DNA of 64,000 bases from Octopus sinensis (lineage: Eukaryota): contig NC_043017.1 of assembly GCF_006345805.1 (NCBI RefSeq), positions 3,968,001-4,032,000 on the forward strand, given 5' to 3'. Shown one piece after another: positions 911 to 63,843 of the stretch; position 1 is the first letter of the stretch, and each line of letters begins with the position of its first letter. Below the pieces are notes generated by a model. It did no database searches and was not told where the DNA came from. It worked only from the letters and a program-made list of their open reading frames with translations. The position numbers were made by a program, and so were the translations under genes.

Positions 911-934
911 TTACAGATTTGGTTCTGCCTTCTT
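911..934 (-). CDS. IF-A putative terminal exon (KKAEPNL*)
   Basis: KKAE resembles IF-C EKAV; the acceptor (ttatgaAG) is weak and other AGs lie nearby; downstream sequence aligns with the IF-B 3' UTR. Confidence 0.4.
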   Translation of the reverse strand, partial: KKAEPNL

Positions 935-1204
935 CTTCATAAATAATTTTGTATGTTTTATATAATAAGGCATATCAAGAAAACATGGATATTATTTGTT
1001 TCTTTATTACCCACAAGGGGCTAAACATAGAAGGGACAAACAAGGACAGACAAACGGATTAAGTCGATTTGCCAGCAAGTAAGGTCAAATGACAATGAAA
1101 GTTAACTTTCGAAGTGCATGAAGTTACAAAGAGAAATGTACTGAAGAGCTAAAGTGGGAAAAGTGGAAGAGAGAATGTGTAGTAAACGATGAGTTAGATC
1201 TTAC

Positions 1205-1318
1205 CTTGCCCATCTCATCTTCCAAAATAATTTTCGATGGGATGGCCTTTGCTTTCCATTCAGCGACAGCGGAAGATGTGATTCCATCTTGCTTAGCACC
1301 GTGCTTTGATCCCCAAAT
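1205..1318 (-). CDS. IF-A exon 10 (LTD)
   Basis: catctttAG / GTAAGA; 114 nt; IWGSKHGAKQDGITSSAVAEWKAKAIPSKIILEDEMGK. Confidence 0.85.
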
Positions 1319-2240
1319 CTAAAGATGGATAAAAGAATTGAGTATAGTAACTACATCATTAAATAAGAGTAATATGTGTTGTAACTTAGACACAAGGTCA
1401 GAACAATGAACGAAAGGTTTAGTCGATCAAATCGAGTCCAGTTCCTCACTGGTACTTTATTTTATAGACCTGGAACGGTGGTGGTGAATGTTGCCTGCAA
1501 CTGAATTTAAACAAAGGCAACAAAGAGCTGGAAATAAATGCCAATGCGTATTTTTCGGATACCCTAGCGATTCTGCTATGGTAGAATGTCTGAAACTTAT
1601 TGAGGAGTTTCTCTGCCGATGTACGTGACTGGTACTTTCTATAATTTATCGACCCCAGAAAGTCATGAAATATTCCCATTAATTGTCAGTGTTAAAATCA
1701 CATTCCAAACGTTACGTAGAGCAATGAACAGTATCAGCCTTATGCCATAATACTAACTGCCCCTGAAGAGGTGGAACGCATAATACTAGGCATTGGGTTC
1801 ACCACTCAAACAATTTGAATTTTTATTGTACACATAATGATTAGCAACTGTTTTCTTGTCTGTGGTTACTACAGTGGTCAGAGAGATGGCAGCCATTTCG
1901 AATTAAATGGTAATGCACAAATTGGAGATGGGTTTACTGACACAATTGGAAAGTAAATGAAATTTTTACATTAAACCCCCTCCTACTCTTCATTCTTATC
2001 ATAGGTCACAGGTAATGGGAGAAAAATATTACGGTTGACATATCTGAAACAATATAACTAATATCACATTATATTGTCTTGCGGTATGCTGACTCCCAGC
2101 AGTCGATAGCTACTAGATTCATTTCTCATCACAGGATCACCCTATATTTTATCGACTTAAACTGGTACTTATAATATATAATATTTAGTTAATATACGTT
2201 ATAAGAATAACAAGCATTTAAAAAATTAACACAAACTTAC

Positions 2241-2350
2241 CTTCACAATTTTGCCAGAACCAAACACGTTACCATCAGTAAATTTATGGGTGTGGCTTTT
2301 GCCATTTTCAAAGGTTTGTGTCAGTTTCCAATTGATCATGTTGGAGCACC
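2241..2350 (-). CDS. IF-A exon 9 (LTD), 110 nt, apparent 1-nt deletion
   Basis: NMINWKLTQTFENGKSHTHKFTDGNVFGSGKIVK aligns with IF-B exon 9 (111 nt), but read in phase 0 gives GAPT* (TGA 2338-2336). Confidence 0.75.
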
Positions 2351-2662
2351 CTACGATTAGAAAAAAGATATACATTAAACAAAAGTAAAGGAATATTGAT
2401 ATTGATGACAATGAATTAAGTGGACAGTCAACATACCGTTGAACATTACAGAAGTTAAATATATTTCCATGTTTGCGGGCGTGTGTATATGTGTGTGTGA
2501 GAGAGAGAGGTGGGGAATGAAGATTTCTTGCATCTTCTGTCAGACAGTGGCACCAAACAGTAACGTCCTTCTTACGAGCACATAAGTCACAACAATTATG
2601 CACACAAAGCAACCAAAGAAAAATACAAGTGTCTATTAAACTATTGGCTGTCAAAGTCAATG

Positions 2663-3225
2663 TATTGGGTTGTCCGGAAAGTTCGTGCCGATTTTTAGCA
2701 GCTTACCTTCCGACTTAGTTCAGAACATGGTTGAGTCCATAAAATAGGATTTGACTACACTTCCATTTAGAGCACAGTTTAAGCTATCTTTTCGTGGAAG
2801 AAGGTTTATGTTCCTATAACCTCTGTTAATTATGTAACCCTTTAAAATGGATGATAAGAAAGTTCATTTTCGGTACTTTGGGAACCAGACAAAAATTGCT
2901 GCAGCTCGGCTGGGATGTGTTACCCCACCCTCCATATTCACCAGATATTGCTCCTTCGGATTTCCACTTATTCAGGTCTCTGCAGAATAGTCTTAATGGT
3001 AAAAATTTCAATTCCTTGGATGACGTAAAAAGATACCTTGATGAATTATTTGCCATGAAACCACCTAAATTCTGGGAAGAGGGTATTTTCAAGATAAAGG
3101 AAAGATGGAGACGCATTGTGCAACAAAATGGTTCATATTTGGTTGATTAAAAATGCAATGGCAAGTATTTATTGACCTTTTTCTTTCCTTTAAAAATCGG
3201 CACGAACTTTCCGGACAACCCAATA
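2663..3225 (+). mobile_element. Internally deleted mariner element with perfect 33-bp TIRs and TA TSD
   Basis: TIRs 2665-2697 and 3191-3223 (ttgggttgtccggaaagttcgtgccgattttta), TA on both sides; ORF 2851-3150 has the HPPYSPDIAPSDFHLF mariner motif. Confidence 0.93.
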
Positions 3226-3308
3226 ATTATGAGAAAATGGTATATAAGGGCAGAATTATATCTACCAACATGAAAACTAATAAATCAAGAACAAGCAAGT
3301 ACACTCAC

Positions 3309-3397
3309 GCTCGGAGGCTTAGTAAGGTCTTCAAGTGTAATGTATTTTCCCTTGGTTTCTAAGTCAACAATTTTCACAACGCTTTGGCGTGGCATAG
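3309..3397 (-). CDS. IF-A exon 8 (LTD start)
   Basis: ttttgaacAG / GTGAGT; 89 nt, phase 1->0; MPRQSVVKIVDLETKGKYITLEDLTKPPS. Confidence 0.75.
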
Positions 3398-61015: not shown

Positions 61016-61299
61016 ACTGTATGTACAATCTTTTATAATGACAGTAGTTTCTTGTATCGAAGACTTTTCAGCAATTTCATGCAGTGATCGAATGCTTGCG
61101 TTGCACATTAACTCCCTCCCTCCATCAAATCGAAATATCATGTAGAGACGCGCTTTCAGCTGTCGAAGAAACTGGTGAGTAAGGTGAGATGAAGTGTTTT
61201 GCTTGAGAGCACAACGCACCGCCCAGTTCTGGAATTGAACCTAACATCGTGAGTGTCATACTCTAACCACTAGGCCACACGTCCTCTATGAAAAAGCCT

Positions 61300-61597
61300 G
61301 TTTATTGAGTGAAAACACCTAAAGCTCCACGAGGCTCCGGCAGGGGATGGTGGTGATCCCTGCTGTACTCTTTCACCACAACTTTTTCTCACTCTTACTT
61401 CCTGTTACTGTTGTACCTGTATTTCAAAGGGCCGGCCTTGTCACTCACTGTGTCACGCTGAATATCCCCGAGAACTACGTTAAGGGTGCACGTGTCTGTG
61501 GAGTGCTCAGCCACTTACACGTTAATTTCACGAGCTGGCTGTTCCGTTGATTCGGATCAACCGGAACCCTCGTCGTCGTAACCGACGGAGTGCTTCC
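61300..61597 (+). mobile_element. SINE2 lacking the tRNA head
   Basis: Body matches 44505-44893. Confidence 0.8.
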
Positions 61598-61631
61598 TAA
61601 TGAAAAAGCAATATTACATAAATTTACTTAC

Positions 61632-61753
61632 TGCCTTCTGCTGACATGGATGACTTGAATGCTGTTGACCTTTGCATAATGGCATTAGAAAGTGCTTCCT
61701 CCGAAGAGCTCTGGAATCCTCCGATTGAGCTCACCATACTGCTATGACTTATC
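61632..61753 (-). CDS. IF-C proximal tail exon
   Basis: tgtgttacAG / GTAAGT; 122 nt, phase 2->1; ISHSSMVSSIGGFQSSSEEALSNAIMQRSTAFKSSMSAEG. Confidence 0.85.
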
Positions 61754-62794
61754 CTGTAACACAAAGGAATTGAAAAGTAAAGAAATATACAACTTCGATT
61801 GAGCACGCTTGAAATCAAAATTGTTCCAATCGTTATTAAGCGCCGCCCCCACTTTTTTTTTCAAGCTTTGCTAGTTTGTATCCGATTATGAATTTGTGTT
61901 GCAAGATTCCTGATGTGAGAAGCCATGGGTTGAAACAGATATTGTTACATTTCGGGACGGTCATTTTATTTTTCTTGCTAAATGAACACACGCTCTATAT
62001 ATTCGTTCTTCACTGGATTACTATTGTTGTTCTTATTTTATCTGATGTGTATTGTCTGGAAGTCTTTCGTTATACATCTGTGAACACTTCAGCGACACTT
62101 CCATCCCGCGTATCTCCTCCTCTTCTATTTGAACTAAACAGAGAATGGACTAAACACGGGTGTGCGACGAAATATTTCCGGACATTGGACATAAGATAAA
62201 TAAGAAGAATAATAAACGAGTCAAGAACGAATATTTATCTAAAGGAAAGATGATCAGTTGAAAATTAGTATGAAAATCATGATGATGACTATGATGGTGG
62301 TGGTGGTGGTGGTGGTGGTTTTCGTGGCGGAGAAAGAAATAAAGTAGAAAAAAATAAAGAAGAAGAGTAAGGGGAGGAGGATAAGGAGAAGGAGGGTAAG
62401 GAAGGCAGCGTGACCAACCCACCTGTTATCAAGAATTATATTGCGTAATTTGTCCTTCCATTTTAACATAATGAATTTTGATTTCAGGAGGATTTGGTTC
62501 CTATTTCTAGCAGAGCAAACAGCAACATAATAACTCTCTCTCTCTCTCTCCACACACATATATGTAAATGTGTGTGTATATACATATATATATATATACA
62601 TATATATATATATATATATATATATATATATATATATATACATATATATTCATATACACATATATATATACATACACACACACACACACATATATATATT
62701 AACCTATGTTTTTGTGAAGCATTGTGCTGTATAAGTTTAAAGTATGTAGCTTTACACAACTATACATATATATGTATGTATTATCTTTTAATTC

Positions 62795-63258
62795 CTTCTG
62801 TCATTTCACTGCGCCCATGCTGGTGTACAGCTTTGAAGGGTATATATTTGAACAAATCGGCCCTAGGGCTTATTTCTTTGAAGCCTTGTTCTTATTTAAT
62901 CGGCCTCTTTTGTCAAACCGCTTTGTAACGAGGACGTAAAGACAGTAAAACTATTTGTCAAGCTGTGGTAAGAGACAAACACAGAGACACACCTACAGAG
63001 ATACACACACACACACACACACACACACATACACACACATACATACATATATATATATATATATATATATACATACATATATCAGCATATATATACACGA
63101 GGACTTCTTACAGTTCCCGTCTACTAGATCTATTCACAAGGCTTTGGCTGGCTCGAGGCTATAACAGAAGGCACTTGATTAAGGTGTTACACAGTGGGAC
63201 TGAACCCGGAATAATATGGTAGAGAAGCAAGCTTGTTACCACGCAGCTATACCTGCGC
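62795..63258 (-). mobile_element. SINE3 diverged copy
   Basis: Reverse complement of the SINE3 consensus. Confidence 0.7.
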
Positions 63259-63622
63259 TTATATATATATATATATATATATATATATATTCATATAAGA
63301 AATTAAAAAAGGAAAATACGCCCACTTACATAGTTTTAATATGATTTTTTGTATATCGATCGGTTTCGCTATCGATATTCATGATATTAAGTTTTACTTA
63401 TTTGAATATATATTTTTTCTTAAGAAGAAATTTTGTCAAATCGAAATTCCTCTTTTCTGTTACTACTATATATATATATATATATATATATATATATCAT
63501 TGTGGCAATGCGCATACGTTAAAAATTTGTCAAAAGTTGACAATTAAAAATAATTAAGTTGCTGTGATCTGCGCGAGGGTATTCACCCGAACTATAAAAA
63601 ATATATAAATTTCAGTATTTAC

Positions 63623-63843
63623 CTGTGTTCTTCGCCCTCCAACAGTTTGCGATAAGCAGCAATCTCAAGTTCCATCGACAGTTTGGCATCCATCAGATCT
63701 TGCAGTTCCTTCATCAGTCCTTCTAATTCAAGTTGAAGTCTTTCGACGTCGTTCCTGTGTGCCTCCTTTTCGTGATCTAAGTCGTTTATAGTAGTTTCTA
63801 ACTCCATTGTCACTGATCTTAGTTGGCCAGTCAGTTGAGCAAG
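63623..63843 (-). CDS. IF-C coil-2 end exon (earlier exons lie beyond the window)
   Basis: ttcgtttatAG / GTAAAT; 221 nt; LAQLTGQLRSVTMELE...ELQDLMDAKLSMELEIAAYRKLLEGEEH. Confidence 0.95.

Follow-up and report, generated by a model that had tools for sequence, protein, structure and literature searches.

The neurofilament gene of the squid Doryteuthis pealeii reportedly encodes NF60, NF70 and NF220, one gene being diversified by RNA processing, and it is from the squid neurofilament proteins that the RefSeq names of the related Octopus genes derive. Cytoplasmic intermediate filament (IF) genes of invertebrates tend to be few and to evolve slowly. Here we describe a 64-kb stretch of the Octopus sinensis genome (CM016879.1:3,968,001-4,032,000, assembly GCA_006345805.1; 'the window') that carries IF genes in tandem. 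Three of them lie in the window, all on the minus strand: the last six exons of a gene that we call C, and the 11 exons each of genes B and A; a fourth, D, follows past the left edge. We consider it likely, with a probability of roughly 75%, that the window is a slice of an octopus tandem cluster of protostome-type cytoplasmic IF genes, in which the A/B/D clade multiplied after the split from Argonauta, evolves at a near-neutral rate and is expressed in skin, with gene A translated.

The octopus genes resemble the squid gene in encoding cephalopod cytoplasmic IF proteins with a lamin-like long rod and a lamin tail domain (LTD), and gene C has a predicted LTD-less end that stands to its full form as NF60 does to NF70. 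They differ from it in that the octopus cluster is diversified by at least 10 tandem copies, and in that A, B and D belong to an octopod-only clade and are not orthologs of the squid gene. An initial annotation, made from the letters of the window, had referred to the one-gene alternative splicing of the squid; this holds here only for the putative LTD-less end of gene C, the cluster being otherwise diversified by gene copies. A six-frame scan of the window gave no dense cluster of KSP-type motifs such as an NF220-type exon would have. The NF70-type IF protein of the snail Cornu aspersum (Q25017) shares the domain plan, the rod length (351 versus 346–350 residues) and the coil 2B end motif, but is only 22–29% identical; its true Octopus ortholog is another protein, P0067 (P and L numbers are our labels for proteins and loci), and the cluster is cephalopod-specific.

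Nuclear lamins are alike in rod geometry, and the AlphaFold model of the gene B tail can be overlaid on lamins B1 and A/C at TM values of 0.73–0.88. Cephalopod lamins lack a CaaX box and carry a W-rich C-terminal motif, TPsQqkkgWlFW (PMC10125929). We found no CaaX box, no basic nuclear localization signal cluster in the tail and no W.FW cephalopod lamin end in A, B or C, and therefore regard them as cytoplasmic IF proteins rather than lamins. Vertebrate type I/II keratins offer a further comparison, as they too form large tandem clusters with duplication, gene conversion and birth-and-death, and their products are abundant in skin. There is, however, no direct orthology: the Octopus proteins keep a lamin-like long coil 1B and an LTD, the cluster shows no sign of obligate heterodimer classes, and epidermal expression of its products is suggested by their presence in mucus. 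An octopus-private, near-neutral, skin-expressed cluster of at least 10 genes would parallel the expansion of the vertebrate keratin clusters independently.

In the open reading frame (ORF) listing of the window and among its composition-filtered minus-strand ORFs, IF-like coiled-coil exons were confined to the minus strand. Gene B exon 1 as the sole query of a homology search gave no match, the scored words in common being too few. When an approximate composite of the gene B rod exons was used instead, Octopus entries named '70/60 kDa neurofilament protein(-like)' were returned, and RefSeq entries are present for all three genes: XP_029649219.1 (P0132) for C, XP_029649227.1 (P0001) for B and XP_036367711.1 (P0121) for A. 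Locus look-ups place them in a same-strand tandem array of at least 10 IF genes that covers at least 250 kb (~3.78–4.03 Mb) of CM016879.1. In descending coordinates the array runs C, B, A, D and P0010 (ifa-1-like), followed by a 51-kb 'gene' with P0005/P0007 and an internal 213-aa rod fragment, by P0009, P0008 and a 570-aa gene and, ~130 kb past the start of the last of these, by the canonical P0015; this order is mirrored by consecutive O. vulgaris accessions. The initial annotation had proposed three same-strand genes in an array that might reach past both window edges. All three genes and the extension were confirmed, while three proved too low a count, as the paralogs at the locus number at least 10. 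The next paralog after D, P0010 (L002/L004, ~3.899–3.923 Mb), no longer has the consensus at the end of coil 2B (MEVAAMLAQLKDVD); tandem GPQTEGESAP repeats separate its rod from its LTD, and it was found in skin mucus. Literature searches within the library used turned up no paper on this cluster, which is poorly annotated and apparently undescribed; its three genes in the window are nonetheless already in RefSeq, and it is no new kind of system.

Each gene encodes a head, then a coiled-coil rod that is long as in lamins, and an LTD, and the products would be filament-forming cytoskeletal subunits. The spliced translation of gene B is 100% identical to its RefSeq protein, which uses B exons only. 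It scores 104.8 bits against Pfam Filament (cut-off 40) and 22.7 bits against LTD, and its rod measures 346 residues between the conserved ends. Both B and C carry the coil 1A start LNSKLA/LNERFA and the coil 2B end EIAAYRKLLEGEE. The AlphaFold model of B has three rod helices and, at residues 433–551, a beta-sandwich (pLDDT 76–92); when this tail was searched with Foldseek, 16/16 top matches were lamin Ig-folds, the best being lamin B1 (3UMN_A; E = 1.6e-11, TM 0.88, rmsd 2.1 Å).

Every junction of gene C is GT-AG, and the translation of its six exons equals the C-terminal 248 aa of XP_029649219.1 with 100% identity. Its product reaches 169.4 bits against Pfam Filament (same cut-off), has a rod of 350 residues and differs from that of O. 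vulgaris (P0014) at 2/248 residues (0.8%). Our spliced reconstruction matches exactly the 221-nt coil-2-end and 111-nt LTD exons shared by B and C and the tail phases 2/1/0/0/0 that the initial annotation had read. If the donor after 61632 is read through, the C protein ends in ...SSMSAEGSK before a stop, with an AATAAA signal at 61306. This alternative C-terminus is the end of the 461-aa O. bimaculoides RefSeq '60 kDa neurofilament protein' (P0013), and because the two ends are the same, gene C appears from its sequence to retain an NF60-like variant without LTD. Gene C is of the neurofilament type, evolves slowly and is shared by octopods in conserved form; its orthology and naming suggest a neuronal role.

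We then placed these genes in a neighbour-joining tree (200 bootstraps, limited taxa). The tree splits a mollusc-wide NF70 lineage, represented in Octopus by P0067 on a different chromosome, from a cephalopod clade. Gene C falls together with its orthologs P0016 of Argonauta and P0013 of O. bimaculoides (bootstrap 100). In the A/B/D clade, a single Argonauta gene, P0011, is sister to ~10 Octopus genes (bootstraps 100 and 98), and gene A forms a very long branch that is sister to the B/D group (bootstrap 92). No decapodiform member of this clade occurred among the best 120 of 312 matches to the gene B composite. The tree thus agrees with the lineage-specific local expansion that the initial annotation suggested, and neither A nor B has one-to-one orthologs across molluscs. 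B, A and D would have arisen by tandem duplication inside the Octopus lineage after the Argonauta split.

In the comparison of O. sinensis with O. vulgaris, dN/dS is 1.74 for gene A (21 non-synonymous to 3 synonymous changes; 6.2% amino-acid divergence), 1.13 for B (34 to 8; 5.5%) and 1.48 for D (28 to 5; 5.4%), while the amino-acid divergence is 0.8% for C and 0.2% for P0015. When A, B and D are pooled (83 non-synonymous, 16 synonymous), a dN/dS of 0.5 or less is rejected (p = 5e-5). Across a ~6-kb tract that spans gene B exons 3–6 and the introns between them, B and D (L001 46224-51940) are 95–98.5% identical, versus 68–79% in the parts of the two genes on its 5' and 3' sides, and exon 7 of gene A is 93% identical to that of D. 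Together these identities point to gene conversion. The clade would be subject to apparent birth and death together with gene conversion, at a roughly neutral protein rate.

Gene A shares the 11-exon plan and the intron phases of B, with exons of different size. Its last exon, EIDNLDIK*, was located at 331-305 by DNA alignment to B and D, and the position of 911 given by the initial annotation is unsupported. A candidate last exon at 554-465 ('KSCVVKIAYE...') was dropped, as its counterpart in D lies within an intron and the alignment to B and D gave 331-305. The head domain is nearly absent. The rod is 297 residues long, 49 shorter than in its relatives, and has lost 19, 6, 10 and 14 residues in frame; between the same conserved ends, the other rods measure 346–352 residues (D ortholog 346, snail NF70 351, cuttlefish 352), and P0010 aligns at 365. 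The coil 2B end motif is degraded to LQIAHYRKLLDVGEKK, and Pfam Filament scores 28.5 bits (E = 1.6e-6), below the cut-off of 40. The initial annotation had seen an IF rod plus LTD and no CaaX box in every gene; the absence of CaaX stands for A, B and C, and the rod of A falls short of the Pfam threshold. The graded divergence that the initial annotation described, with C canonical, B intermediate and A highly derived, is reflected in Filament scores of 169, 105 and 28.5 bits. The homology of A to the IF family is nevertheless not in doubt, because phmmer aligns it to B with E = 1.5e-60 and the two have exon structure and phases in common. Overall, the A protein is 31–61% identical to B (rod ~31%), and its own tail is 61–68% identical to the tails of B and D. 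The cluster lends itself to studying how far an IF rod tolerates changes in length, with gene A as the test case.

In the O. sinensis assembly, one A is gone from an AAA run in exon 9 of gene A (~2341-2342), where the sequence is GGTGCTCCAACATG as against GGTGCTCCAAACATG in O. vulgaris. If exon 8 is spliced at its consensus donor (GTGAGT after 3309), the frame is broken four codons on. This is either a true O. sinensis-specific lesion or a homopolymer error of the PacBio-based assembly. A rescue of the frame through the weak donor GTGTAC at 3305 is unneeded, since O. vulgaris transcripts take the consensus donor and a 111-nt exon 9.

The genomic locus of O. vulgaris (L006, OX597834.1:41,384,276-41,477,716) contains B, A and D in the O. 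sinensis order. There, exons 2–11 of gene A are intact, with an exon 9 of 111 nt, and D is intact. De novo transcript ORFs of O. vulgaris (PMC11431876 supplements) join the gene's own exon 1 to its own LTD as modelled, confirm exons 8–11, and encode 472 aa, equal to the model prediction. Gene A is the extreme member of the clade, near-headless, with a short rod and a degraded coil 2B end motif, and yet still transcribed and translated with its own LTD.

The public gene models are less faithful. RefSeq XP_036367711.1 is identical to gene A in exons 1–7 and then continues into the LTD exons of D, ~27–29 kb past the left window edge. Because it skips A's own LTD exons for those of D, this model is, on its exon composition, a chimera of A and D. 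In the annotation of O. vulgaris, B, A and D are fused into a single gene of 73 kb, in which B exons 2–11 and all of A are unannotated, with frames intact; its protein CAI9738632.1 (P0002) joins B exon 1 to D exons 2–11, 58 kb away. We had considered P0002 a plain ortholog of B or D, and dropped this in favour of a B/D chimera. Two public annotations thus contain chimeric models here, XP_036367711.1 and CAI9738632.1. In O. sinensis, gene D, whose O. vulgaris ortholog is CAI9738633.1 (P0131), is short of 2 nt in exon 1, away from any homopolymer run, and has no gene model of its own. O. bimaculoides has at least three B-like genes (P0003, P0012, P0019); at L007 (CM046621.1:9,221,725-9,245,560), RefSeq splits a compact B-like gene of ~14 kb into 'genes' of 257, 192 and 155 aa.

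Evidence at the protein level comes from the proteome of O. vulgaris skin mucus, where the LTD and the IF rod rank with the most enriched domains (PMC11431876). Its supplements list peptides for B, the D ortholog, the ifa-1-like gene, C and A: 17 peptides for B, which is 4–5-fold higher in senescent animals, and 33 peptides for the D ortholog, at 48% coverage. The initial annotation had allowed that A and B might be unexpressed or mis-assembled haplotigs; both were found as protein in O. vulgaris, and they are not haplotigs. The same study labels the gene A ORFs 'omega-crystallin (AAA16613.1/Q06268)' and reports that senescent octopuses have more of this protein in their mucus. The 'Q06268' rows and the gene A ORF (Cluster-58773.35223) have the same abundance ratios and p-values, and the published 'omega-crystallin' senescence biomarker of mucus is therefore the gene A product. 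As every IF-type ORF in that study carries the omega-crystallin label, it looks like a mislabel, either in the study database or in the GenBank entry. Correcting the gene models and this label matters to octopus proteomics and to work on welfare biomarkers. Products of the A/B/D clade are thus present in skin mucus and rise in senescent animals, and we infer that they are mainly epithelial (skin) IFs, loosely analogous to those of the vertebrate keratin clusters.

Several points weigh against a translated, skin-expressed clade that multiplied within Octopus. The tissue evidence is from O. vulgaris skin mucus only, and 'epithelial' is not meant as exclusive. The taxa in the tree are limited, and the long branch of gene A leaves its exact place uncertain. 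The O. vulgaris assembly lacks ~2.3 kb that would hold gene A exon 1 and the promoter region (L006 38836-38840, corresponding to window ~20717-18376). O. vulgaris transcripts do contain this exon, in three variants that differ by ~10% in exons 1–2 (Cluster-58773.35222,.35223 and.35225), and the discrepancy could reflect structural polymorphism, extra copies or mis-assembly. Frame-breaking lesions are present in the O. sinensis assembly in both A exon 9 and D exon 1. Finally, a dN/dS near 1 is equally expected of decaying genes, although we infer that the fast evolution of A, B and D reflects selection rather than relaxation.

The last two points lead to one alternative, which we consider unlikely, namely that gene A and, in O. 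sinensis, also gene D are unprocessed pseudogenes, that the graded divergence is the decay of redundant copies, and that C and perhaps B are the functional genes. The dN/dS values of 1.7 for A and 1.5 for D, the 1-nt deletion in A exon 9, the 2-nt deletion in D exon 1 off any homopolymer, and the missing O. vulgaris exon 1 would all fit such decay, as would a rod that is 49 residues short and under the Pfam cut-off, and the residues of the last strand of A, which have turned polar (EIDNLDIK versus ECATVVIKINS). However, with a rod ~31% identical to that of B, gene A still has 1.4 kb of coding sequence without a stop codon, its four rod deletions are all multiples of three (57, 18, 30 and 42 nt), and 20/20 splice sites are intact. 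These features argue for long-term selection for an open frame in A. In O. vulgaris, moreover, A exons 2–11 are intact, full-length transcripts carry the 472-aa ORF and A peptides occur in mucus, and the D ortholog is intact and abundant (48% coverage), while the lesion in A exon 9 lies in an AAA run of a PacBio-based assembly and may be an error.

We give similarly little credence to a bolder proposal. In it, the clade private to Octopus (B, A, D, the ifa-1-like gene and the P0005–P0009 genes) would be a convergent keratin-like epidermal IF system under diversifying selection. Gene A, near-headless and with a rod 49 residues short, would thus be unable to pair in register with its neighbours, and would either modulate assembly or be a soluble protein tied to senescence and wounding, a new subtype in either case. 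Since the intron phases are common to all units, splicing across them, from B exon 1 into D exon 2 or from A exon 7 into D exon 8, might also take place and yield combinatorial subunits.

Such junctions are central to another explanation, under which B, A and D would make up a single complex transcription unit whose first exons and exon cassettes are used alternatively. P0002 joins B exon 1 to D exons 2–11 within the 73-kb O. vulgaris gene model, P0121 joins A exons 1–7 to D LTD exons in a 49-kb RefSeq 'A' model, and the P0005/P0007 isoforms cover a 51-kb 'gene' that encloses another rod; as all paralogs have the same intron phases, any cross-unit junction would stay in frame. We nevertheless believe this to be improbable. 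Each unit has its own ATG exon, conserved 5' region, terminal stop exon and nearby poly(A) signal. About 130 nt upstream of the ATG are alignable among A, B and D (A and B are 75% identical over 150 nt), and a poly(A) signal lies close behind each stop codon, at 22823 in the case of B; the presence of both elements at each gene argues for separate transcription units with their own promoter and 5' untranslated region. O. vulgaris A transcripts run from A exon 1 to A's LTD and not to that of D, and the B RefSeq protein is built of B exons only. Pipelines that bridge near-identical paralogs or dodge frameshifted exons give the simplest explanation of the chimeric models, and P0121 omits exactly the exons downstream of the frameshift.

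That the array is an artefact of haplotigs or of collapsed or duplicated segments is effectively refuted: the 6-kb B/D tract at 95–98.5% identity and the small indels of a PacBio-based assembly here would suit it, but the A and B proteins are only 31–61% identical, B and D differ by 21–32% in their 5' and 3' parts, the order C-B-A-D-ifa-1-like is repeated in an independent assembly of another species (L006), and several members have distinct peptides.

The coordinates of the genes within the tandem cluster, and of the other features of the window, are collected below.

Table. Positions of genes, exons and repeats, numbered from the first nucleotide of the window unless another sequence is named; exons are listed in the order of transcription.
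Feature	Position	Strand	Details
Gene C, 3' part	56020..63843	-	XP_029649219.1, 591 aa; 5' exons beyond right window edge
Gene C exons, first three in window	63843-63623, 61753-61632, 60128-59998	-	221 (coil 2B end), 122, 131 nt
Gene C exons, last three	57680-57570, 56936-56820, 56064-56020	-	111, 117, 45 nt (last with stop)
Gene C, putative alternative end without LTD	61626..61753	-	donor after 61632 read through
Gene B, complete	22904..48676	-	XP_029649227.1, 552 aa; 11 GT-AG exons
Gene B exons 1–6	48676-48255, 42945-42759, 39645-39550, 38120-37956, 35574-35458, 34904-34684	-	422, 187, 96, 165, 117, 221 nt
Gene B exons 7–11	31799-31714, 26689-26586, 25262-25152, 24291-24178, 22939-22904	-	86, 104, 111, 114, 36 nt
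Candidate B/D gene-conversion tract	33476..39859	-	~6 kb
Gene A, complete	305..18857	-	472 aa with exon 9 intact; 11 exons
Gene A exons 1–6	18857-18508, 14939-14810, 13432-13337, 12897-12751, 10005-9919, 7835-7657	-	350, 130, 96, 147, 87, 179 nt
Gene A exons 7–11	5984-5896, 3397-3309, 2350-2241, 1318-1205, 331-305	-	89, 89, 110, 114, 27 nt
Gene A exon 9	2241..2350	-	110 nt, not 111
Gene A conserved proximal 5' region	18858..19000	-	homologs upstream of B (48677-48820) and D
Gene D, complete fourth IF gene	L001 41505-59246; CM016879.1 ~3,937,612-3,955,353		12.6-29 kb past left window edge
SINE-like element, positions of copies	23438, 25665, 25849, 35167, 46856, 47095, 49183, 49373, 49557, 54321, 54505, 54689, 60684		~184 nt; 13 copies
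SINE-like element, tandem units (examples)	54297-54847, 49158-49604		2–3 units
Long microsatellites (AT)n, (TG)n, (ATAG)n	19026-19285, 41370-41542, 50205-50728, 59221-59833		introns and intergenic DNA

The first intron of gene B contains a fragment of a piggyBac-type transposase at 45014-45373 on the plus strand (Pfam DDE_Tnp_1_7, E = 6.9e-11). Pfam was empty for most intronic ORFs, including others that resemble mariner elements or remnants of long interspersed elements. The short interspersed element (SINE)-like repeat, of which no copy is expected by chance, often stands in tandem units; neither its copies nor the rest of the window gave a tRNA or RNA family match with ARAGORN or Rfam. Strong local spikes of GC skew in the window are due to the long microsatellites.

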